Positions 41,967 to 54,601 are shown, counted from the first letter of the stretch. The stretch: DNA of 64,000 bases from Bugula neritina (GCA_964035545.1 OZ037773.1:339751-403750); one strand, 5' to 3'. Made by a program: numbers and translations. The notes: generated from the sequence alone by a model not told the origin.

Positions 41967-44900
41967 ATGAGTACAACAGGACGAACTTTGCATGAGGCAG
42001 AAAATGCGGCAGAAGCAAAACTGATGGTAGGGTCAGTCAAAGGAGAAGAACTGAGAGACTTTGTGCTATCAATTGATGAACATCAATGTACAGCATTGCA
42101 CAAAGCTGCTGACCATGGTAAAGATGATGTTGTAAAGTATATCTGTAGCCTATTTCCTGGCAATGATGAGTTGCTGTTCAAAAGAGATTGTGATGGTTGC
42201 ACAGCTCTACACTGTGCAGGAAGCAAAGAGGTGGCGAGAATTCTTGTAGAGTCGGTTTCCCAAAAAATAAGAAGAAATTTTGTGCTGTTGGGTGACAATG
42301 ATGGATCAACAGCATTACATACAGTTACTGAAGAAAGTAAAACTGATGTAGTAGCATATCTCTGCCACCTTTTTCCAGGTGATGATGAGTTGATACTAAA
42401 AACAGATGACAGTGATAGAACAGCTCTACATTATGCTAGCACAATAGATGTAGCAAATTTACTTGTTGAGTCAGTCAAACATGAAAATCAACAGGAGTTT
42501 CTTTTAACTCAGGATGCTTTTCAGTACACAGCCTTACATTTGGCAGTCCATGAAAAAAAGCACAGCATGGTAGACTATCTCTGTGGTTTAAATATATCCA
42601 AGGATGAACTAATACTTGCTAAAGATTTTCTTGATTGCACAGCTTTGCACTACGCTGAAGACAGATGTATGGCGGAAAAACTTGTCGAGTCAGTTACACC
42701 AAAAAAGCAAAAAGGATTGGTGACATCAGTGGATGCATGTGAAAGATCTGCTTTACATATAGCTGCTAGTTGTGGAAGGACCGATGTGGTACAATATTAT
42801 TGTAGCTTGCATCCAATTGCAGAAGAGGTAATATTCATGGTGGATTGTGATGGAAAGACAGCTTTACATGATGCAGAGAACATAGATATAGCAAAAATAC
42901 TGATGAATTCAACTGGGCTAGAAAAACAAAAATTACTTATGCTGACTGCTGATGAGACTGGATGCACAGCTTTGCATACAGCAGCAGAGGAAGGCCGAGT
43001 TGATGTTGTAAATTTTTTGTGCAGCTTTCATCCTGCCGATGAACTGATAGCACAGAAAACTTGCGATGGTAAAACAGCTTTACATTGTGCTAAAAACAGA
43101 GAGATTGCACAGTCAATTGTAGAATCACTCAGACCAGAAAGAAGGAAGGATTTTTTACTATCAGTTGATAATAATCAGTTTACACCATTACATTGTGCTG
43201 CTGCAGAAACAAATGATGATGTAGTAGAATATGTCTGCTCTGTTTTACCAACCAATGAGGTGCTTCTCATAAAAGATGAAGATGGTAGAACAGCTCTACA
43301 TTATGCCCAAAGTAGAAAAACTGCAGAATCACTTGTAAACTCAGTTGAACCAAAGAAGCAAAAAGAATTTGTCATGATGTTAGATGACTACCACTGGTCA
43401 GCATTAACTTCTGCAGCTGCCATAGGCAACAGCAATGTAGTAGAATACTTATGTTCTTTTATTAAAGAAGATGACTTCATACTAAACAAAGACTTTAAAA
43501 GCAAGACAGCACTTCACTACGCCAAAAATGAAATAATCGCGCAGCTTCTAGTCGAGTCAATTACACCAGAAAAGCAAAAGAAGTTTCTGGCATTTGTTGA
43601 TGAAGATCATTGTACAGCATTGCATAGGGCTGCTGAAAATGGTAGAAGTAGTATAGTGGAATACATCTGTGGTTTATATCCAAATTATGATGAATTACTT
43701 TTAAAGAGGGACAAATTTTGCATGACTGTATTGCACTATGCTAGAGACAGAGAGGTGGCAGAGCATCTTGTAAAAGCTGTTGTACCAGAAAAAAGACAGG
43801 AGTTTGTATCATTTGTTGATGATCATCAGAGTACAGTTCTACACCTGGCTGCTTCTTCTGGTGCAGCTGATATAATAAAATATCTTTGTGGCCTATGCCA
43901 ATCAGCGAATGATGAGCTAGTACTAAGCAAAGATTGCTATGGAAATACAGCTCTGCATTATGCAGTGAATAGAGAAATAGGAGAAACACTGGTCAAGTCA
44001 GTTACACCTGAAAGAAAGAAAGAACTGTTACTATCTGTTGATGAAAATCGGTTCACAGTACTACACAATGCAGCTATTCGTGGTAGAACAGACGTAGTTG
44101 AGTATCTTTGTGGTATTCCTCAAATTAGCGCTGAGCTGATACTTGTCAAAGCAATTAATGGCTACACAGCTTTGCATTATGCCAAAAATGGAGCAATTGC
44201 AAAAGCGATAATTAATGTGTCAGATATTGATTTGATGCAAGTTCTATCAATCAAAACAAGTGGAGGTGATACCCCTATATTAACACTTGCCAGATTTGGT
44301 CGTTACGATGCTTTAAAAGAAGTTCTTCAGCAGTTGGAACAGCTTGATTCAAGTGTGCTAATGAGTTACTTGCTAGAACGTAATGAAAACAATCAAAACA
44401 TTTTACATGTTATTGCCTTATCGCCAATCCTAGAAGACCTGTCTTTACTACTGAGAGACTATTTTTGCAGTTCAGATATTATGGATATGATGTACCCTGA
44501 CATCTATGGTAACACACCAATTCATTATGTTGCTGCTAAATATGATACCAAGACATTTGCCGATTTTATGCTAAACCTTCCTTTGGCAATAAGAAAAAAT
44601 ATTGCAGATGCATCAAATGTACAGCTAACTGATTGTCGGAGAATTATTTACAAAAAGTCATTCAACGAGCTATTCTACGTTCAAAAGGTGCTCTGTGATG
44701 AGTCTAACAAGCAACTGACATCTAAATTTAACAACGTTAAAGCTCTCTTTGCAGAAGATTTAGAACAACAGTTGGCTGCACCTGAAAATGCTTTCAAATA
44801 TGATGTAAATATTCTCAGAGTATTGAAATACTCATTAAACGAATACTCGCTGTTAGACTCTGTTTACAAGACATCACATTTTCTATTCTCTGCAGCTTTC

Positions 44901-47900
44901 AATAGCCAGAGAGCAACTGTACTGTCCAATGAAGCATACAGAAGCCATAAATTGTTGGTGGGTTGCTCTCTCTATATACTGCTTACCTTGCATTTTTTTC
45001 CACATAATTTTTGAGTTTCATATTGCGACAAAGCCACATGAAACTTCATGAACATATCTAAATTCCTGTTATCAAAAGATGTAAGTAGCTCAATAGGCAT
45101 CTCAACAATTTTTCAGCCCTTTACAAAGTTTATGTATAAGCATTTGGGATCAAGTATGAGCATATATTCTGTGAAACAATAAGTATTTTTATTTACAGAG
45201 CAAATTCAATCATTAAAATATTTAAATTTTCTATAATCTGTCTATTGCTGGTATTATAACTCCAATTCATCAATATTTTAGCATGAACTAGTTGATATAC
45301 TTGTGTGATACAGTTATAAACAATGATAAAACTTTAGACCTAATAAATATACACTATTGAAGTATTTCTATTCCAGAAGCTGACTAAAGCCGAGGATCAT
45401 GTGTTTATAGCCATAGACACAGACAGTGTGGGGGAACCTAAACAAATTGAAATACAGAATACACTCAATGATATGGACATGCCCAGATACAATGGCAAAC
45501 CTAAGGTGATCATAACTTTACCTGCTATTGACTGCAGTTCAACTGTATTGTATATAGAATACTAATTTTTCTCAATAAGCATGAGTTTTTTTTCAACTAA
45601 ATCTTAGATTTATTTAACAACCTGTTGAATTTGAAGATGTAAATGAAAGCTGGCTATAAAAATGTACAAAAACACCACATTCAATGTTGTAACAAAACAA
45701 ATCAATATGCTCAATCTGCTTGCATAATAATTGATCTTGTAGTTTGGATATTATATTAATTATTATGCGTTGAAAACCAAAGTTATTTTTAAAGCATTTA
45801 AATACATTTCTGCTGTATTGATCCAGATAGCTGTAATACAGAACTCACTATCAAGAGCAGATTTGAATCTGATACCACCAGGTCCTGACTACCTCATACT
45901 CTTGGTGAAGTACAACACAGATAAACATGCAAGGTAATGCGTTGCAAGACTGATTCATTGCTCAATGGTACCATGAAAATGCAAAAACAGCTATAATGCA
46001 CTCTCGCACTCAAAGTTTTTGAAGCAGTAATTGATTGGTTTAGTTGTCGAAATTCAAACACAGAAAGTTGTAAATGTGTATAGCAGCATGTACATAATTA
46101 ACATCATTACAATTGAATTTCTGTATTGAAAATTCTTACATATTTTTTATATTATCATAAACATTTTGATAAAACTTTCGTAGCAATAAACAAGTACCAA
46201 ACATGGAAAAGTGTGATTCAATACATTCCATGATTGCTGAACTCAGCAGTGACCCTGATGTGCAGAAAGTGAGTGTAAACTCTACTCTGAACAAGAGATA
46301 CATCAGAGATAAGGATGAGTGGCTGGCAGATGATGATAAAGTAAGTAAACTAGAAAATGGGAATGTAACTATGTTAACTGTTGGTAAAGCAGGTAAACCA
46401 AATGATGCTAGAGTGGGTAGATGAGATGATGAGAAACAACTGAATACATGATTATTGAATAAGTAAAATAGCTGGTAATAAATAAAAGATAATTGAAGGT
46501 AAAACATTAGCTGGAAACTAATTTTTTTTTCTGTAATTTTGTTAGTTTCAGGTTTATTTACGTTTACATGTCAGCATGACATAATGTTTTCTTCATGGTT
46601 ATATGATAAACCCAATGAACTGCAATAATGAACTAATATTATGAAATTTAATGGATTATCGTATTACAGAAGTACACATTGAATTACATAACCTATTTAT
46701 ACGTAGGTGCCAGCTCTACAGACTTCCATGACTACAGATTTATTTTCTGCACCATTATGTGATGAGTACTTCAATGTTTCCATCAAATATAAGAATGAAA
46801 ATTACAAAAGGTAAATATTAAGTAACATTGATGAGTGCATATCAATGTAGCTCATAAGCTACAACCTTTCATACAAAATTTTTAACTTATGTGCTTTTAT
46901 TTATTTATGTAGAAAAAAGGCCATTAGTTTGATGGGGCACCAATCAGTAGAATCACAAGTTGATAAGCTTAGCTGTGACCCTCAGGTGCAGAGTCTAAGC
47001 ATGAATTCAGCAAGCGATGAAAAGCAAGTGTCGAGCTTTTTAAATAAGACCAACAGAGGAAGAGCTTTAATGATATTCAACAACTTTGACTTATGTCCTG
47101 AACCAACAAGACATGCTAAAACCATTTCTCAAGAAAGAGCAAAAACTTTATTGAATGCCCAAACAGTTTTAGCTGACCATTTTGGGCTTCAAGTAAGCAA
47201 TAAAATATAGAATATTATCAATTTTAATGCAGCTTACGGCCAATGCTAGCACAGACTGCTTTAAATTCCTTATTTCTTTTAGAAGTGTAGTGTTGATTTA
47301 ACCCAACAGCTCCTGTGGTGTAATTGGTTAGCGTGCCTGCTTGCAAGCTGGAGATCTGTGGTTTGAATCCCGGTGGGGGCAATTATTTTTCAAGCTATTT
47401 CGGCCTTTAGTGAAGTGTAGTAGTAGTAGTACTCCAAGGGAGTTGAGAGGCCAGGGGAGCCTGAAGACTGGAGAAGTAGTAGATATAGGTTAGCAGATTT
47501 CAAAGAACTGGGTGGGATGTAGCAATGATTTTACCCAGTAGCCCCTGTGGTGTAATTGGTTAACATGCCTGCTTACAAGCCGGTGGGGGCAATCATTTTA
47601 TAAAAATTATACTTATTTTCTTGAAGTAACGTCAATTAAAACTTGCAGTTAGTCTAGTAATTATTACATTATTATTATTATTGGTGGTGGTATCACAGCT
47701 TTTTAGCTGGTGTAACCTTCTACTATCGGCCTATAATTCAAATAGGCTGGGATGGACAGAACTTTCTTCAAGATGTGAGTTGATCCTAATAAGGCTGTCT
47801 GCTAAATCAGTAAGTATTTGTTTTCAGCTACTCCAAGTAGTGCCATCCAGTCTACAGTCTTGTACAAAGCTTCAACGGCTCGAACTACAATGGGATGACT

Positions 47901-50665
47901 TTTATTGATGTTTTCTAAAGACGGGTCAATTTTAGCGCTAAATCCTGTACTAAATCTTGGATTCTTTTTTTACTCTGTAGTCACCAGTCACCCGCACAGG
48001 ACTACGACCGTATAGGTGTGAAAGGTGTGAAAGTCACCAGGGACTGCGATATCGATGATTGTTGTTTCAGTATTACGCTTGTCAGTTATCACTATATCGA
48101 GCCTCCTAGCTCTGGTGACTCTGTTGGTGTGTATGTTGAAGTTTCACAATATTTTTAAATTGTCATTTTCCAGTACTGATGCTGCTCGGTGGTTGTATCA
48201 ATTCTTGCTTCTCTGAACCCCATGAAGTGCACACAACTCCCAGCCAATTATCAATGCCACATGGTCTGTCTTCTCTTATATTCTCCTTGTGCTAACTTTT
48301 CACATTCACTCAGCATATGCATCACAGTATTGTCCCTTGCATTACACATCCTACACTTCTTGCTACTTTGTTCTTTTATTATATAGCTACTTTATAATTT
48401 CAAGTAGGGAGTGCCTGATCTTGTGCAGCCAACAGCAGTCCTTCTGTTTCTTTTTTCAGCCAATCAGATTTTAACCAGTTCCATGAGTATGTTTTCATGT
48501 CTTCTACTTTTTTGATGTACCGACCATTTAGAGCCCTTCCTTTCTACCCATCAGTTCTTTCTATTGCTTTATCGTTCTTGAGTTCTATCACTGTTTTGTC
48601 TTTTATAGAAAGGTATTTAGTGTGGTGTTTCCATAAGTACGTGTTCTCTTTATTTAATCTGACATGCTGCATTTTTCAATCCTGACACATTCTTCAATTG
48701 ACACCATCCCTCTGCTGCCTCCCCTTCTGCTAACATACAGCCTGTCTACATCTCCTCTTGGGTGAAGTGCACGATTTATTGTCATTAGCTTCCTTGTCTT
48801 TCTGTCTATGTCTTTTATAGTTTATCAACGGTCTAGTCAAGTGTTCCAGCTGTGTAACACACTGCTGCTACTGCCCAAGTGTTTATTGCTTTGATCGTAT
48901 TCCCTCCGATCAATTTTGATTCCAGAACTTTTCTTATTCGTTTATATTACTCTTTCCTGATCTTATCTTTCATTTCATTTAATTTTATTCTCTCAGTCTT
49001 GAGAACTCTTGGGTACAGCTCCTCACCAATATCTTCGATTACCTGTTCATTAGGCAGTCTGATTCCTGTGTCCTCAATTTTATTTCCCCTTCTCATAACC
49101 AGTGTAGCATATTTTTGTAATCCAAATTTCATTTCTACATCTTTTGTAAAGATTCTGGCAGTGTTGACCAATGCTTCCAGTTCTAACTTTGATATCCTAT
49201 TTAGCTTCAGTCATCCACATATAGAAGATATTGTCTTTTTCTGCTCCCCCCCCCCATCTTGTATCCTTGAGCCGCTTCTTTCAATAGAATAGATAGTAGG
49301 ATAAAAGCAGTTACAAAGAGAAGTAGAGATAGAGTTTCCTTAAAAAATTATTATTATTATTACTATTAAAATTATGCACTAGAACACTACTCTGTGTTCA
49401 CCAAGGTCAAAGCAATGATGGGATCTGCGCTTTTTACACTTCAAAATAATCAATTATTATTTCTATAAAAATGAGTTCCATGAATATTTTTAGGTTGAGA
49501 AAAAGTATGACATGTCTGCCAATAAAATGCTAAGTTCCATATCAGAATTCTCCAGATCAGAAGGACATGGTACAATTGCTGCTCTAGCCATCTTCTCTCA
49601 TGGTAAAGATGGGATGGTTTATGGACATGATGGCGAGTCAAACTGTTCAGTGCAGGAAATAGTGAATCACTTTAATCTTGGTCATGTCAAAGATATTCCA
49701 AAGGTTTGCCTACAACTGCTTTTGTGTCTTATTTCACAACTTGAGTTGTTTAAAGTACAAAACAAAGCAGTCAGGATCTACCATTCCATTTAGTAGAATT
49801 AGTATCCACTGAGCTGCATGATTGTTTGTAAATATGTAAATACTACACATTGTAGATAGTGTTCCTGTCCTGCTGCAGGGGAGATATTTCAGCCATATAC
49901 AATAGAGCTCCTCATAGTTTTGAATCTAGTGAAAAGTTTCCTGATATACCTTTACTGTATAAACCAATCAAGAGAGAACTGCCTCCGATAGTTAAAACTA
50001 GAGAATGGGAAAGACAAGCTACAAACTGCAATCTTCCTCTTGATATTTCAGTAGATTGTTACGTCTGCTTTACAACTCTTCCAGACAGCAGGTAAGTATT
50101 GAGACGAATTTATGTGTTTTTATAACATCTTGAAGCTTTTAGTCAAAGTTTATTGGAGTTGATTTTCATAAGCTTTTTGCTTCATAAAGGAACTCAATAA
50201 ATATTTGATTTTGTATCATTTTCCTAGCACATGGTCATGTTGCAATTGACAAGTCACCTTTTTTCTGTAGCCTACAATTGATTTCATAAATTAATGTTTT
50301 TTTTAAATTTGTTAAAATATAATTTCAGGTCAAAAGCTGGAATGTTTTTCAAATACTTTTCTGAATATCTCTCTGAGCTCACTAACTGCAGAGCTTCTGA
50401 CTCCCAACTATCCAATAAGTTTGTGAGAGACACTACATCTAGGAACTCCTTTCAAAGCCAAAAACAACCACCAGAGGTCTCTGTAGAACGTCTTGTCCTT
50501 AACCCAACCGTACAGAGAGTAGAACTAGTTGATCTGCTTACAGATGTAGCTGGAGTACTGAGAGAGAAGTTTCAATCTAAGCAATGCTTTAACTTGTGTT
50601 ACTCTGTAAATAGAGACAGCAAGCATGTTGTTATAGATCTCTCACCTTCAAATCTTTGTGACTAG
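41967..50665 (+). CDS. Ankyrin-repeat / caspase-like (peptidase C14) fusion protein (~1516 aa)
   Basis: Exons 41967-44957 (~24 ANK repeats), 45377-45505, 45827-45933, 46184-46340, 46707-46810, 46913-47192, 49494-49703, 49856-50091, 50329-50665. All GT-AG with compatible phases; the joined 4551 nt is open. Caspase motifs RGRALMIFNN, IFSHG and IPKIVFLSCCRG, plus a p10-like C-terminus. Confidence 0.85.
47286..47602 (+). mobile_element. TRIM (miniature LTR element) with tRNA-derived LTRs
   Basis: LTR1 47286-47392 (TGTAG...TTCA) contains a tRNA-like segment 47309-47381; PBS AGCTATTTCGGC 47393-47404; PPT-like AAAGAACTGGGTGGGA 47502-47517; LTR2 47518-47602 is a homolog with a ~22-bp deletion. Confidence 0.75.
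47683..49340 (-). mobile_element. Degenerate R4/Dong-like non-LTR retrotransposon (RT C-terminus plus restriction-like endonuclease)
   Basis: Minus-strand fragments ALHPRGDVDRLYVSRRGG and RARRLDIVITDKRNTETTIIDIAVPG; bounded on both sides by (ATT)n/(TAA)n repeats, the typical Dong target. Confidence 0.8.
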
Positions 50666-51547: not shown

Positions 51548-54500
51548 TTACTCATCTACATAAAAGTCTGCCAACCACCTGGGTGGCTGTCTATCTCTTA
51601 CTGGCCGGTCAATCACTTCGTCTACACTTTCACCTTCTTCAACATTTTCACCATCCACAACTCTATTTGCATCTGCATCCTCATCAGCATTATCTGACCT
51701 CAGGTTAATTTCAATGTCTCTATGTACCTGAGATTGTTGTTTTGTACTGGATGAAACGTCACTACTTTCCCTGTTCCCTGTATTAGCCAATCGGACATCG
51801 CTTACATGTCGTGTCATACCATCTACCATTACTGCAGTGTTCGACACAACCCTAGTAATCGTGCCCTGTGGCCATGCAGTTGTGCATTTAGAATTCACAG
51901 GTTTTACATATACTTTGTCTCCTACATTGTAGGGGTTTTTTGTAATGTCTGTGGGTTTGCCTACTGTTGATGGTGATACTTTAGGCAGCTTTACATTATA
52001 GCTGTATAAACTTCGTGAAGGTATTACATTGTTACTATTTGGAGTGTTGTTGTACCAAAATACCATATTTTCTATTGAGGATCTAGTTCGAGCTGCCATT
52101 CTTTTTATAGTCCTGTGATTGCGCTCTATGACACCATTTCCAGATGCTCTATAAGCACAGCTAAATATGTGCTGTACATCCCACTGGCTAAGTAACTGTT
52201 TCAATCTGTCACTTCTAAAGCATGGTCCGTTGTCTGACAGTAACTCTGTTGGTGGACCACGTTGCTGAAACACCTTTAGTAGGTGATTTACCACAGAGTC
52301 AGCTGTCTCATTCTGCAACTTTATCCACACAGCAAATCTACTTGGACCACAGTCGATAATAGTCAAGTACGGTACACGATTATAATGACTCACATCCATT
52401 GCCAGCCTATACCAATTCTCATTGACCTCCAGAACTCCTCTTTCCCACTGCACTGGAGAAGGGTCAATACTCCTACACGCAGCACATTCCTTGACTACTC
52501 TTTCAACTAACTCCTTGTCTATGCTTTCTCCGAATTTACATTTAGCTAAATAAAATGTTCTTTCAATGCCCAAATGATGCATTCCATGCATCTTGGCTAT
52601 TTCATCCTTCAGGTCAGCTACATCAGGAGTTGTCACACCTGCACTTGCACAGGTTATTCGCTTAGTAAGCCATGCTGAACTCACCCGTGTCAGAGCATCT
52701 GCCCAATTCTCAGCTGATTTCACTAAATGTATTCTTAAAGACAGCTTGTACTCTTCTATCAGTTCCGCTATAACACCTAACCTACGTTTCACAATCATCT
52801 CATTCATGCCATTAACTTTTGGTCTGACACTATCATTGATTACAGATGTGACCCACCTGAATACTGACATTGAATCGGTTTTCACTACAATGTTGCATAG
52901 ATTCCATTTTAAAGCCAAATTTAGGCCTTTTACCACAGCTTCTAATTCTGCTACACTGATGTGGGTGCAATCATCGGGTTTTCTCATCCACGAAGCATCC
53001 TCCACTATTTGGTCATCTATTTGTACAGACACTCCTATTGCCAAACTGCTTGCATCACACCATACAGTGCCTGTATCAGTATTAGCCACATGCCACTTTC
53101 CTTTCACAGGATCAGATTTTGCAACTCTATCTAATGTCTCTAACAACATCTTTTGAACGTGGTCAGACACAGCACTATCCCACATATCTGATTGCGTCAA
53201 CCTTTTCATAAAACTGCATGCTACCCTAAGCCATCCTGCTACAGGAAAATGTCTAGTCAGTTTACCACACACTGAAAACAGCTCTCGCTTGCTTATGCTG
53301 CTATTTGACTCAAGAGATGGTAGCTCACCATCACGCTGCCAGCTATAACATGACATGCCACCTCTATGCCCCTCTCTAACCCTTAGCCCTAAAACTCTAG
53401 CATTACTGAGTTTCTCTGGTTCTTTAGTAACCAAACCGAACTTCAACAAATGATTTCGAACTACTTCTACCGAAACAACAGTCTCATCAACTATAATGTC
53501 ATCTATATAACTATCAGTACCTTTTTGGATAGTGTCATCTTGAGCCAGCACTGTAGATAAAACTTTTGACATGATTTTAGGTGCCACATTTAAACCAAAA
53601 CCTAACCTAGTCATTACATAGATCTTACCCTCATACCGTACAGCTTGAAACCTTTGCAAATCGCTATCCACATGAAGTTGTAAGTAAGCTTTTCTTAAAT
53701 CCAGCAAACTGGCATTGTCACCAAGTAGCCTCCATTTCCTCAATTTATCCTGACAAATGGCAGTGTCACCACTGGGCTTACTGTAGATGTATTTGTTGAG
53801 TTCTCCACTATAATCCATAACAGGTCGAACCTGGGTTGGTTTATTTGGCTGGGCAGCAGCCACCAATGGTACAATTCCAGTGACTGTACCATGTAATTTA
53901 TTGTCATACAATTGTAGCCATCCATCATTAATCCATTGCTGAATCTGCTCATGGTAACTATGCTTGAATTTGTCTTTTACAGCATACTGTCCACATTGGT
54001 TCTGTAATGTCGGTTCACCATTCTCCCATTTCCACCTCACTGTCCATTTTTTACCATCAAATTTAGCATTAAAGTCAGTGTCACTAACAGAAAGTTCACC
54101 TGTACTATCACTAGTTAATGTCTTATCAAATCTATCTACCCCTACACCTAGACTAACAGCACTAACTTTACCAACTTCTGTTGTTGGTTCAACTGCAGGA
54201 AACATCACCTGCTTATTCCTAGTAATTGTCACACCACCTAATTTGCTAATAGCATCTATTCCCAAAATTAAAGAGCAACCACCTACTAACATTGGAGCTA
54301 TTAAACATTTTACAGAGAGATGACGATTTCTAACCTGCACTGCTAATTGAGCTTCACCCCTACATTTAGTTATTTGTCCATTTAGCATTAGAACCCTCCG
54401 TTCAGGACCACATGGTGCAACACCTAGCTGATTACAAAATCTTTCTAAAACTACTGATTGTTCACAACCACTATCTACTAGTGCTTTTATGCTCACACTG

Positions 54501-54601
54501 TTTACATTTACAGTTATTAGTGGTAGCACCGAATTGCAATTTAGTTGTTGGGGTGAGCATCCGGTGCTGACACTGCCCCACCGCCGTTTCCCTGTGGGCA
54601 A
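51548..54601 (-). CDS. pol: Retrotransposon Pol (protease-RT-RNase H-integrase), probably expressed by -1 frameshift
   Basis: LVDSG protease; LDLRKAY and YIDD RT; WCDASS RNase H; HHCC (HGMHH...CAAC) and DDE integrase (MDV, SDNG, IERN); uninterrupted 1017 codons. Confidence 0.92.
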   Translation of the reverse strand: MPTGKRRWGSVSTGCSPQQLNCNSVLPLITVNVNSVSIKALVDSGCEQSVVLERFCNQLGVAPCGPERRVLMLNGQITKCRGEAQLAVQVRNRHLSVKCLIAPMLVGGCSLILGIDAISKLGGVTITRNKQVMFPAVEPTTEVGKVSAVSLGVGVDRFDKTLTSDSTGELSVSDTDFNAKFDGKKWTVRWKWENGEPTLQNQCGQYAVKDKFKHSYHEQIQQWINDGWLQLYDNKLHGTVTGIVPLVAAAQPNKPTQVRPVMDYSGELNKYIYSKPSGDTAICQDKLRKWRLLGDNASLLDLRKAYLQLHVDSDLQRFQAVRYEGKIYVMTRLGFGLNVAPKIMSKVLSTVLAQDDTIQKGTDSYIDDIIVDETVVSVEVVRNHLLKFGLVTKEPEKLSNARVLGLRVREGHRGGMSCYSWQRDGELPSLESNSSISKRELFSVCGKLTRHFPVAGWLRVACSFMKRLTQSDMWDSAVSDHVQKMLLETLDRVAKSDPVKGKWHVANTDTGTVWCDASSLAIGVSVQIDDQIVEDASWMRKPDDCTHISVAELEAVVKGLNLALKWNLCNIVVKTDSMSVFRWVTSVINDSVRPKVNGMNEMIVKRRLGVIAELIEEYKLSLRIHLVKSAENWADALTRVSSAWLTKRITCASAGVTTPDVADLKDEIAKMHGMHHLGIERTFYLAKCKFGESIDKELVERVVKECAACRSIDPSPVQWERGVLEVNENWYRLAMDVSHYNRVPYLTIIDCGPSRFAVWIKLQNETADSVVNHLLKVFQQRGPPTELLSDNGPCFRSDRLKQLLSQWDVQHIFSCAYRASGNGVIERNHRTIKRMAARTRSSIENMVFWYNNTPNSNNVIPSRSLYSYNVKLPKVSPSTVGKPTDITKNPYNVGDKVYVKPVNSKCTTAWPQGTITRVVSNTAVMVDGMTRHVSDVRLANTGNRESSDVSSSTKQQSQVHRDIEINLRSDNADEDADANRVVDGENVEEGESVDEVIDRPVRDRQPPRWLADFYVDE

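Follow-up and report, generated by a model that had tools for sequence, protein, structure and literature searches.

Can one animal gene code for an array of ankyrin repeats and a caspase, and how would such a caspase be controlled? The question is raised by a stretch of 64,000 nucleotides from Bugula neritina (GCA_964035545.1 OZ037773.1:339751-403750), hereafter called the window, in which an open reading frame (ORF) of 1015 amino acids at 41967-45014, nearly all ankyrin (Ank_2, E = 3.4e-81, 14 stretches), is followed on the plus strand by exons with the motifs of a caspase. Caspases of animals are usually activated by death-fold adaptors which gather the initiators or, in the effectors, by cleavage of the inter-subunit linker. 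The best explanation of the locus, to which we give a probability of about 0.6, is a single chain consisting of ankyrin repeats, a pseudo-caspase and a caspase, in which the pseudo-caspase would be the beta6 partner of the caspase in cis and the ankyrin array would gate the protease.

Gene model and order of the domains

Reading of the splice sites and translation of the candidate exons gave a B. neritina gene of nine exons (E1 to E9) with GT/AG introns and compatible phases at 41967-50665 (+). The joined exons comprise 4,551 nt or 1,516 codons, with one stop, at the end. The product is a cytosolic protein of 1,516 amino acids, in which approximately 24 ankyrin repeats are followed by the putative pseudo-caspase, a linker with a partial duplicate of it, and a complete caspase (peptidase C14, with the His/Cys dyad). 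The main features are, in the coordinates of the window:

Exon 1, 41967-44957, plus strand: 997 codons, ends in phase 0; ankyrin array, helical cap and long helix into the putative pseudo-caspase module.
Intron 1, 44958-45376, plus strand: GT..AG; the donor GT is kept in the ortholog.
Exon 2, 45377-45505, plus strand: first part of the putative pseudo-caspase (...AEDHVFIAIDTDSVGEPKQIEIQNTLNDMDMPRYNGKPK); the catalytic His is absent.
Exon 3, 45827-45933, plus strand: predicted beta4-beta5 of the pseudo-caspase (IAVIQNSLS...PPGPDYLILLVKY); ends in phase 2.
Exon 4, 46184-46340, plus strand: predicted C-terminal helix and beta6-like strand of the pseudo-caspase (SIHSMIAELSSDPDVQKVSVNSTLNKRYIRD), and the start of the linker.
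Exon 5, 46707-46810, plus strand: linker with the apparent partial duplicate of the pseudo-module.
Exon 6, 46913-47192, plus strand: up to about 47048 the beta6-like motif of the duplicate (SCDPQVQSLSMNSASDEK); from 47049 caspase beta1-alpha1 (RGRALMIFNN...ISQERAKTL...HFGLQ).
Intron 6, 47193-49493, plus strand: 2.3 kb, filled with repeats.
Exon 7, 49494-49703, plus strand: caspase beta2-alpha2-beta3; IFSHG, with the catalytic His codon at 49599-49601.
Exon 8, 49856-50091, plus strand: LSCCRG, with the catalytic Cys codon at 49874-49876; inter-subunit linker ISAIYNRAPHSFESS; start of p10 (DCYVCFTTLPDS); ends in phase 2.
Exon 9, 50329-50665, plus strand: completes the split Arg codon; remainder of p10 (RSKAGMFFKYF...VELVDLLTDVAGVLRE...CFNLCYSVNRDSKHVVIDL); stop codon at 50663-50665.

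A preliminary description, made from the sequence of the window alone, had taken the 1015 amino acid ORF to be only the first exon, spliced in frame through eight more, and the nine-exon ORF with its single stop bears this out. The joins which it proposed (44957>45377 and 47192>49494, exons at 49494-49703 and 49856-50091, end at 50665) all have GT/AG borders and compatible phases, and the motifs IFSHG and IPK/IVFLSCCRG (the slash marks the junction) are both present as described. The start ATG is preceded by an in-frame stop 6 codons away, and the sequence upstream of the ATG is unconserved. The 19-codon read-through tail of the 1015 amino acid ORF falls in intron 1; it is also unconserved, and differs in length and sequence in P0001. 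Exon 5 is needed because the reading frame between E4 and E6 must be kept. An alternative E4 donor at 46268 was ruled out, since the next 72 nt encode the conserved VNSTLNKRYIRD motif, with 0 indels.

Evidence for a single gene

The case for splicing was made by comparison with a second assembly, with paralogs and with Watersipora, and from these comparisons the locus is very probably one gene with an ankyrin / pseudo-caspase / caspase architecture. In the second B. neritina assembly (GCA_010799875.2, contig VXIV02002151.1, locus L028) the locus is collinear, with the 1,516-codon ORF uninterrupted and every GT/AG site retained. All nine exons align with 0 indels at 90-96 % identity, as against 74-87 %, with indels, in every intron and in both flanks; intron 1, for example, has 77.5 % identity, with 45 bases deleted and 3 inserted. 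Exon 5 has 92.3 % identity and 0 indels, and the introns flanking it 82-83 %. At a synonymous divergence (dS) of 0.156, the ratio of nonsynonymous to synonymous divergence (dN/dS) was 0.30 for the whole ORF. It was lower in the caspase core (0.18) and slightly lower in the ankyrin array (0.28), and higher for E5 with the first part of E6 (0.51) and for the C-terminal tail (0.68). Gene structure, domain content, conservation under purifying selection and membership of a family are taken as shown.

Both assemblies are labelled B. neritina, and the dS of 0.156 in the gene and the difference of 13-26 % in introns and flanks exceed what is expected within a species. This divergence agrees with what is known of a cryptic-species complex; a very divergent haplotype is the alternative.

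Searching the genome (216,009,554 bases in 321 contigs; published as 216.00 Mb in 9 chromosomal pseudomolecules, PMC11480708) with the last 257 residues of exon 1 identified 17 further loci, in each of which the match lies within a long open frame. All 17 have, within a few kb, segments like E2, E3, E7, E8 and (mostly) E9, arranged and oriented as in the window gene. Two neighbouring transcription units, an ankyrin gene (with or without the pseudo-caspase) and a caspase gene of its own whose first codon is a Met in E4 or E6, the fusion being an artefact of prediction, would be compatible with the in-frame Met codons in E4 (MEKCDS...) and E6 (MGHQS...), with NCBI models which never cover the full gene at the window locus, and with the DNA-like behaviour of the single public run that contains the stretch. 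The paralogs argue against such a pair of genes. In 7 of them and in Watersipora, a single exon free of stops holds both the E4-like end of the pseudo-module and the E6-like start of the caspase; and no intron separates the ankyrin ORF from the E2 segment in paralog L025, where the frame runs on to ...GQPK, or in Watersipora, where it runs on to ...HSKPK. Both fusions, E1 with E2 and E4 with E6, are thus present together in Watersipora subatra (OY755159.1, locus L030), where they lie upstream of a RefSeq gene annotated as 263 amino acids. At each of the other junctions a single structural element or codon is divided (GKPK/IAVIQ, IPK/IVFLSCCRG and the split Arg/Lys codon of TLPDS-R/K-SK), and the phase-2 intron in the split codon was found in every paralog in which both motifs could be located. 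The compatible phases of all junctions, the conservation of split codons among the paralogs and the unconserved read-through tail of E1 likewise speak against two units, as does an NCBI paralog model in which Ank and Peptidase_C14 are united (P0159, EB796_011352, 1175 amino acids; it lacks the conserved C-terminal helix and beta6). The B. neritina NCBI models are AUGUSTUS predictions with transcriptome hints (PMC7576161), and P0159 is therefore weak support only. Taken with these comparisons, two separate units appear quite improbable, and the fusion of array and caspase in a single chain which had been proposed in the preliminary description is upheld.

The closest proteins in the databases are from Bugula neritina, with 91-92 % identity, and sequences of the family appear in public databases only as truncated 'hypothetical proteins'. 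The ortholog model P0002 (EB796_014620, 92 % identical) begins inside E1 and skips E5-E6, although both exons are intact in the underlying assembly. Similarly, the Watersipora RefSeq model P0030 (XP_067930803.1, 263 amino acids) consists of E7-E9 only, and the ankyrin, pseudo-caspase and E4-E6 exons are found just upstream of it. P0029 and P0014 were considered as possibly spliced, independent transcripts and ruled out, being AUGUSTUS models from the same draft genome.

The caspase domain

Pfam, AlphaFold2 (AF2) and Foldseek were run on models of the ortholog and paralogs, and the spliced window protein was examined with our own hidden Markov models (HMMs). PF00656 matched the ortholog model P0002 with E = 5.2e-14 and paralog P0011 with E = 9.5e-12, and structures of CED-3 matched the active domain with E = 2.9e-9. 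An HMM of 12 canonical caspases matched the spliced window protein at residues 1206-1339, across the E6/E7/E8 joins, with E = 1.7e-20 (Z = 20000), whereas single window exons gave no Pfam caspase hit. A profile search for Peptidase_C14 and Ank had been suggested earlier as a check on the fusion; the spliced protein and the ortholog match caspases, and exon 1 matches Ank_2.

The SHG and xCRG motifs are kept in all 18 genes, i.e. the window gene and the 17 paralogs. The active-site pentapeptide is SCCRG in the window gene, and the Gln of QACRG is replaced by Ser in most members of the family (SCCRG, SACRG, SYCRG, SFCRG). C. elegans CSP-1 also has SACRG. In p20, the HMM aligns the Arg of ISQER with the canonical S1 Arg, and Arg is found at this position in all 8 genes with an alignable E6. 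The split codon in p10 (50090-50091 + 50329) codes for Arg in the window gene, and for Arg (7) or Lys (8) in the 15 paralogs read; in the p10 of Watersipora, S-I-R aligns with the canonical S-W-R. The p10 loop is some 4 residues shorter than in canonical caspases, and the equivalence of the p10 S1 residue is uncertain because of this shortening.

In two respects these results depart from the preliminary description. It had noted no obvious S1 Arg in p10, where the split E8/E9 codon now gives Arg, with Arg or Lys in all 15 paralogs read, and it had taken the Ser in place of Gln as a hint of non-Asp specificity, where Ser is the norm of the family and the p20 Arg and the basic p10 residue are conserved. 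A positive S1 pocket, and hence an acidic P1 residue, would be the simplest expectation, and judged by these residues the protease probably still cuts after an acidic residue. The motif ISAIYNRAPHSFESS in the inter-subunit linker (49883-49927, E8) is nearly identical in at least 8 paralogs which are otherwise 45-75 % identical, and could be a processing site or a regulatory loop.

The domain is likely to be an active protease. Were it inert, or the window copy decaying, its function might be limited to that of a decoy for other caspases or of an inhibitor, and the non-canonical SCCRG pentapeptide, the p10 loop with its missing residues and the relaxed C-terminal tail (dN/dS 0.68) could be understood in that way. 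An ORF intact in two lineages at a dS of 0.156, a dN/dS of 0.18 in the caspase core, and the retention of the His, the Cys-Arg-Gly and the basic p10 residue in all paralogs examined make this reading very improbable.

The putative pseudo-caspase module

We read E2-E4 as a truncated, dead caspase-like module, i.e. a pseudo-caspase in which the catalytic His and Cys appear to have been lost; neither this module nor the paralog family had been mentioned in the preliminary description. On visual inspection, the segments GKPK-IAVIQNS, PPGPDYLILLVKY and VSVNSTLNKRYI resemble beta4, beta5 and beta6 of a caspase, and the caspase HMM places EIQNTLNDMDMPRYNGKPKIAVIQ (E2) on the alpha3-beta4 segment directly before the position of the catalytic Cys. 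That position is Ser in the window gene (E3). Among the paralogs, the positions equivalent to His and Cys are occupied by variable, non-catalytic residues, and the structural motifs are highly conserved.

The AF2 model of the module has a confident core of four strands and three helices, with a predicted local distance difference test (pLDDT) of 80-90, and of 85-90 in the E3 strands. The ESM Atlas model of P0002 184-371 gave template modelling (TM) scores of 0.61-0.65 to the clusters of caspase-7, cFLIP and caspase-2. Caspase or cFLIP chains accounted for 49 of the best 50 PDB rows returned by Foldseek (best E = 3.9e-3, TM 0.34), and VIA-align gave Z 7.7 to caspase-6 (root mean square deviation 3.7 Å over 113 residues) and Z 7.0 to the protease-like domain of cFLIP-L (3.7 Å over 112 residues).

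E5 and the start of E6 resemble a partial duplicate of the module (DEYFNVSIKY, like DYLILLVKY; QVQSLSMNSASDEK). This region evolves faster (dN/dS 0.51), and no such duplicate was seen in the aligned linkers of the paralogs.

The ankyrin array and the region before the protease

The regular array consists of 20 ankyrin repeats of 36-37 amino acids each, forming 10 double units of about 73 amino acids (residues 34-760, nt 42066-44246). After it, exon 1 continues with some 4 degenerate ankyrin repeats, then a helical cap, and lastly a long helix leading into the putative pseudo-caspase. The ortholog counterpart of the last 245 residues of E1 was modelled by AF2 from a 39-sequence alignment with pLDDT 92 and a predicted TM score (pTM) of 0.81, as helix pairs, and Foldseek matched the post-array region only to ankyrin proteins (DARPins, gankyrin, IkB-alpha and the Notch ankyrin domain). 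Because of this confident helical fold and the ankyrin matches, the region is assigned to further ankyrin repeats, cap and long helix, and a hidden death-fold domain (CARD, DED or DD) between array and protease was ruled out on the same two grounds.

No CARD, DED or other death-fold domain and no NACHT or NB-ARC domain was found by Pfam in the window E1 ORF, P0002, P0159 or the exons of the giant paralogs; the only families found in the window ORF, P0159 and the giant paralog exons were Ank and Peptidase_C14. That the protein has no CARD/DED prodomain, as had been suggested before, agrees with the blank Pfam result, with the folding of the pre-protease region as ankyrin and cap, and with the in-frame stop before the ATG.

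The positions which vary among the repeats of the window gene are also those which differ between the two lineages (Spearman 0.45, p = 5e-5).

Predicted pairing and proposed mechanism

For the complex prediction, the pseudo-module was given as P0002 244-371 and the active domain as two chains, P0002 372-632 and the window E6 segment. The predicted complex scored 0.83 (runs 0.82-0.84), compared with 0.00-0.01 in three controls; in the calibration, 51 of 78 solved complexes attained the complex-score mark, as did 2 of 108 mismatched pairs. Agreement between runs is at least 42 % of contacts, with a partner pLDDT of at least 45. The contacts with the least predicted error are between residues 346-358 (QKVSVNSTLNKRY; strand VSVNSTLNKRY, E4) and, antiparallel to them, 607-616 (CFNLCYSVNR, beta6, E9). 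The predicted interface is a beta6-beta6 edge, as in caspase dimers and in caspase-8/cFLIP-L, and both interface strands are strongly conserved among the paralogs. Going by these models, there is about an even chance that the pseudo-caspase pairs in cis with the active caspase.

From this pairing and the order of the domains we infer the following mechanism. The pseudo-caspase would supply, within the same chain, the beta6-beta6 dimer partner which is required for caspase activation, as cFLIP-L does for caspase-8 and as the pseudo-protease domain does for the active domain of separase and of TPR-CHAT proteases. A partner in the chain would remove the need for a CARD/DED platform. Recognition or autoinhibition would fall to the ankyrin array, which would bind a ligand or a substrate and thereby gate the protease. 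The regulation by the array, like the cis pairing, the P1 preference and the biological role, belongs to the inferred part of the account.

Several observations weigh against this reading. Solved caspase dimers remembered by the model may lie behind the complex score, the fold confidence of the partner is low (pLDDT 46-59), and an active domain given as two chains departs from the set-up of the calibration. Structural comparison gave the pseudo-module no more than middling matches (E about 4e-3 and TM 0.34 by Foldseek, Z below 8), which extend over only some half of the caspase fold, and hhalign of the pseudo-module against the active family alignment was weak (E = 0.02), although the segments were nonetheless in the expected register. 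With Gln replaced by Ser in the pentapeptide, more than one P1 specificity is conceivable. The array, with a dN/dS of 0.28, has no sign of diversifying selection between the two lineages, and nothing ties the gene to immunity. Public gene models of the family are fragmentary, and the single public run which contains the stretch is DNA-like, with even depth over introns and exons and without canonical splice joints.

Gene family and other ankyrin-caspase loci

At least 18 loci in the B. neritina genome, that of the window included, make up a lineage-specific family, and Watersipora has a homologous locus. The loci form clusters on C8 (7.33-7.57 Mb and 8.69-8.71 Mb), many in tandem, and others are scattered on C1-C4 and C6. 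Array length differs roughly ten-fold among the members, between a few hundred residues and about 3,000. Two long arrays are coded by single exons which are nearly all ankyrin: at least 2,431 residues, or about 60 repeats, at L032:706-7998:+ (C8:7.567-7.574 Mb), and at least 2,932 residues at L031:3-8798:- (C6:3.073-3.082 Mb).

A different kind of ankyrin-caspase locus was found on C9, the chromosome-scale contig which also carries the window (L034, C9:9320000-9325999). Its ankyrin ORF of 403 amino acids ends in ...KVAIGMIVNNKN, which is like a caspase beta1 strand, and a C14 exon (PF00656, E = 6.5e-10) follows 1.5 kb downstream with the pentapeptide QADHRG, in which Cys is replaced by Asp; no pseudo-module was found between the two. 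Outside the bryozoans, a model from the jellyfish Sanderia malayensis (P0065, EukProt, 1,127 amino acids) unites ankyrin repeats with two canonical caspase domains (PF00656, E = 1e-93), and combinations of ankyrin and caspase are therefore not unique to bryozoans. This model may be an independent fusion or a merged tandem pair.

Genome-wide, at least 177 six-frame Peptidase_C14 matches were counted, with dense clusters at C1 33-35 Mb, C6 2.5-6.3 Mb and C7 7.58-7.71 Mb. This C14 complement is a very large caspase expansion for a genome of 216 Mb.

Relation to known systems

With the animal caspases (MEROPS C14A; CED-3, caspase-2, -3, -6 and -8) the protein shares the PF00656 match, the SHG and xCRG motifs, the p20/linker/p10 layout, and a conserved Arg in p20 and Arg or Lys in p10. 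It differs from them in having about 24 ankyrin repeats and the putative pseudo-caspase instead of a CARD, DED or short prodomain, in having SCCRG where canonical caspases have QACRG, in its shortened p10 loop (by about 4 residues), and in the unusually conserved ISAIYNRAPHSFESS linker.

The pairing of a domain that lacks catalytic residues with a live caspase at beta6 is known from cFLIP-L/procaspase-8 (PDB 3H11, 3H13), both of which are among the best structural matches of the bryozoan module; the bryozoan pairing is a predicted one. cFLIP-L and procaspase-8 are two chains, whereas the bryozoan pair would be one polypeptide without DEDs, with a pseudo-module of about half a caspase fold.

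Csx29 (TPR-CHAT) and separase combine a helical repeat array, a pseudo-protease and an active clan-CD protease, the latter two sharing one sheet (10.1101/2022.08.17.504292). The order of the parts is the same in the bryozoan gene, but the families are C50 and CHAT rather than C14, and the repeats TPR or ARM rather than ankyrin. No C50 or CHAT match was found by Pfam in the active domain of P0002 or P0159, and the likeness is probably convergent, because the bryozoan sequence matches C14 caspases.

Fungal HET-Q2-like proteases (TPR, ANK or WD40 repeats with CHAT or S8) cleave gasdermins in the control of cell death and belong to expanded, clustered families (PMC8851545). They likewise join a repeat array to a caspase-clan protease, but the protease family differs and the bryozoan gene is of an animal lineage; no gasdermin-like neighbour was seen in the 64-kb window. 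In NLR/STAND receptors a repeat array is also joined to a death effector. Because it is without a NACHT or NB-ARC NTPase, the bryozoan protein is not NLR-like in the strict sense, and activation by oligomerisation therefore cannot be assumed. No description of the ankyrin / pseudo-caspase / caspase architecture was found in the literature searched.

Possible biological role

A role as a sensor of danger or non-self is possible but on balance doubtful. The variation in array length, the clustering and the pattern of variable positions are compatible with a recognition family; an immune role is not implied by them. A part in the extensive programmed cell death that belongs to the life cycle of bryozoans is no less possible.

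With the same architecture, the array could instead be a scaffold or substrate-recruiting arm, and the protease could act in the programmed turnover of tissues, as in polypide regression and metamorphosis, or in colony allorecognition, rather than in the sensing of pathogens. Bryozoans cyclically destroy and rebuild their polypides, ankyrin repeats are general protein-binding modules, and the number of six-frame C14 matches in the genome (at least 177) suggests a broad use of caspases; the purifying selection on the array (dN/dS 0.28) and the lack of a NOD domain among the domains found also suit a scaffold. Tandem clustering and so wide a spread of array lengths are, however, more typical of families driven by conflict, and repeat-variable positions which differ between the lineages (Spearman 0.45) would fit the tuning of a binding surface; neither is decisive, and the scaffold, too, is rather unlikely when taken as the whole explanation. 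The most far-reaching proposal, which is speculative and improbable in its full extent, would be that cheilostome bryozoans have immune or non-self receptors of one chain, without NOD domain or adaptor, in which an array of variable copy number senses the ligand and releases a cis-'dimerised' caspase, an animal C14 protease thus built on the separase/TPR-CHAT plan.

If the account of a caspase paired and gated within its own chain is true, the conserved, expanded family, in which a C14 caspase is accompanied in its chain by a pseudo-caspase and a long ankyrin array, would add a third mode of activation to the usual two. It would also offer a simple system in which occupancy of the dimer interface and binding by a repeat array act as controls of a caspase, and an opening into the cell-death and immune biology of bryozoans, which is almost unstudied.

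Intron 6 and the surroundings of the gene

Intron 6 is about 5.5 kb long in the second assembly, compared with 2.3 kb in the window. It contains a tRNA-like element at 47309-47381 (Rfam RF00005, 32.9 bits) and, on the minus strand at about 48650-48790, ORF fragments resembling reverse transcriptase (RT). In the DNA run, contig depth is raised 5- to 70-fold over 47138-48928. One contig of this run has a joint at 50095>50327 by which 231 bases near intron 8 are skipped. It was rejected as a canonical junction, having GT..TC ends, a 29-nt side and genome-like depth, and probably derives from a paralog or is an artefact of the assembly graph. About 900 bp past the stop codon of the gene, the window contains on the minus strand (51548-54601) a retrotransposon pol-like ORF of 1,017 amino acids, in which protease, RT, RNase H and integrase motifs were recognized by eye.

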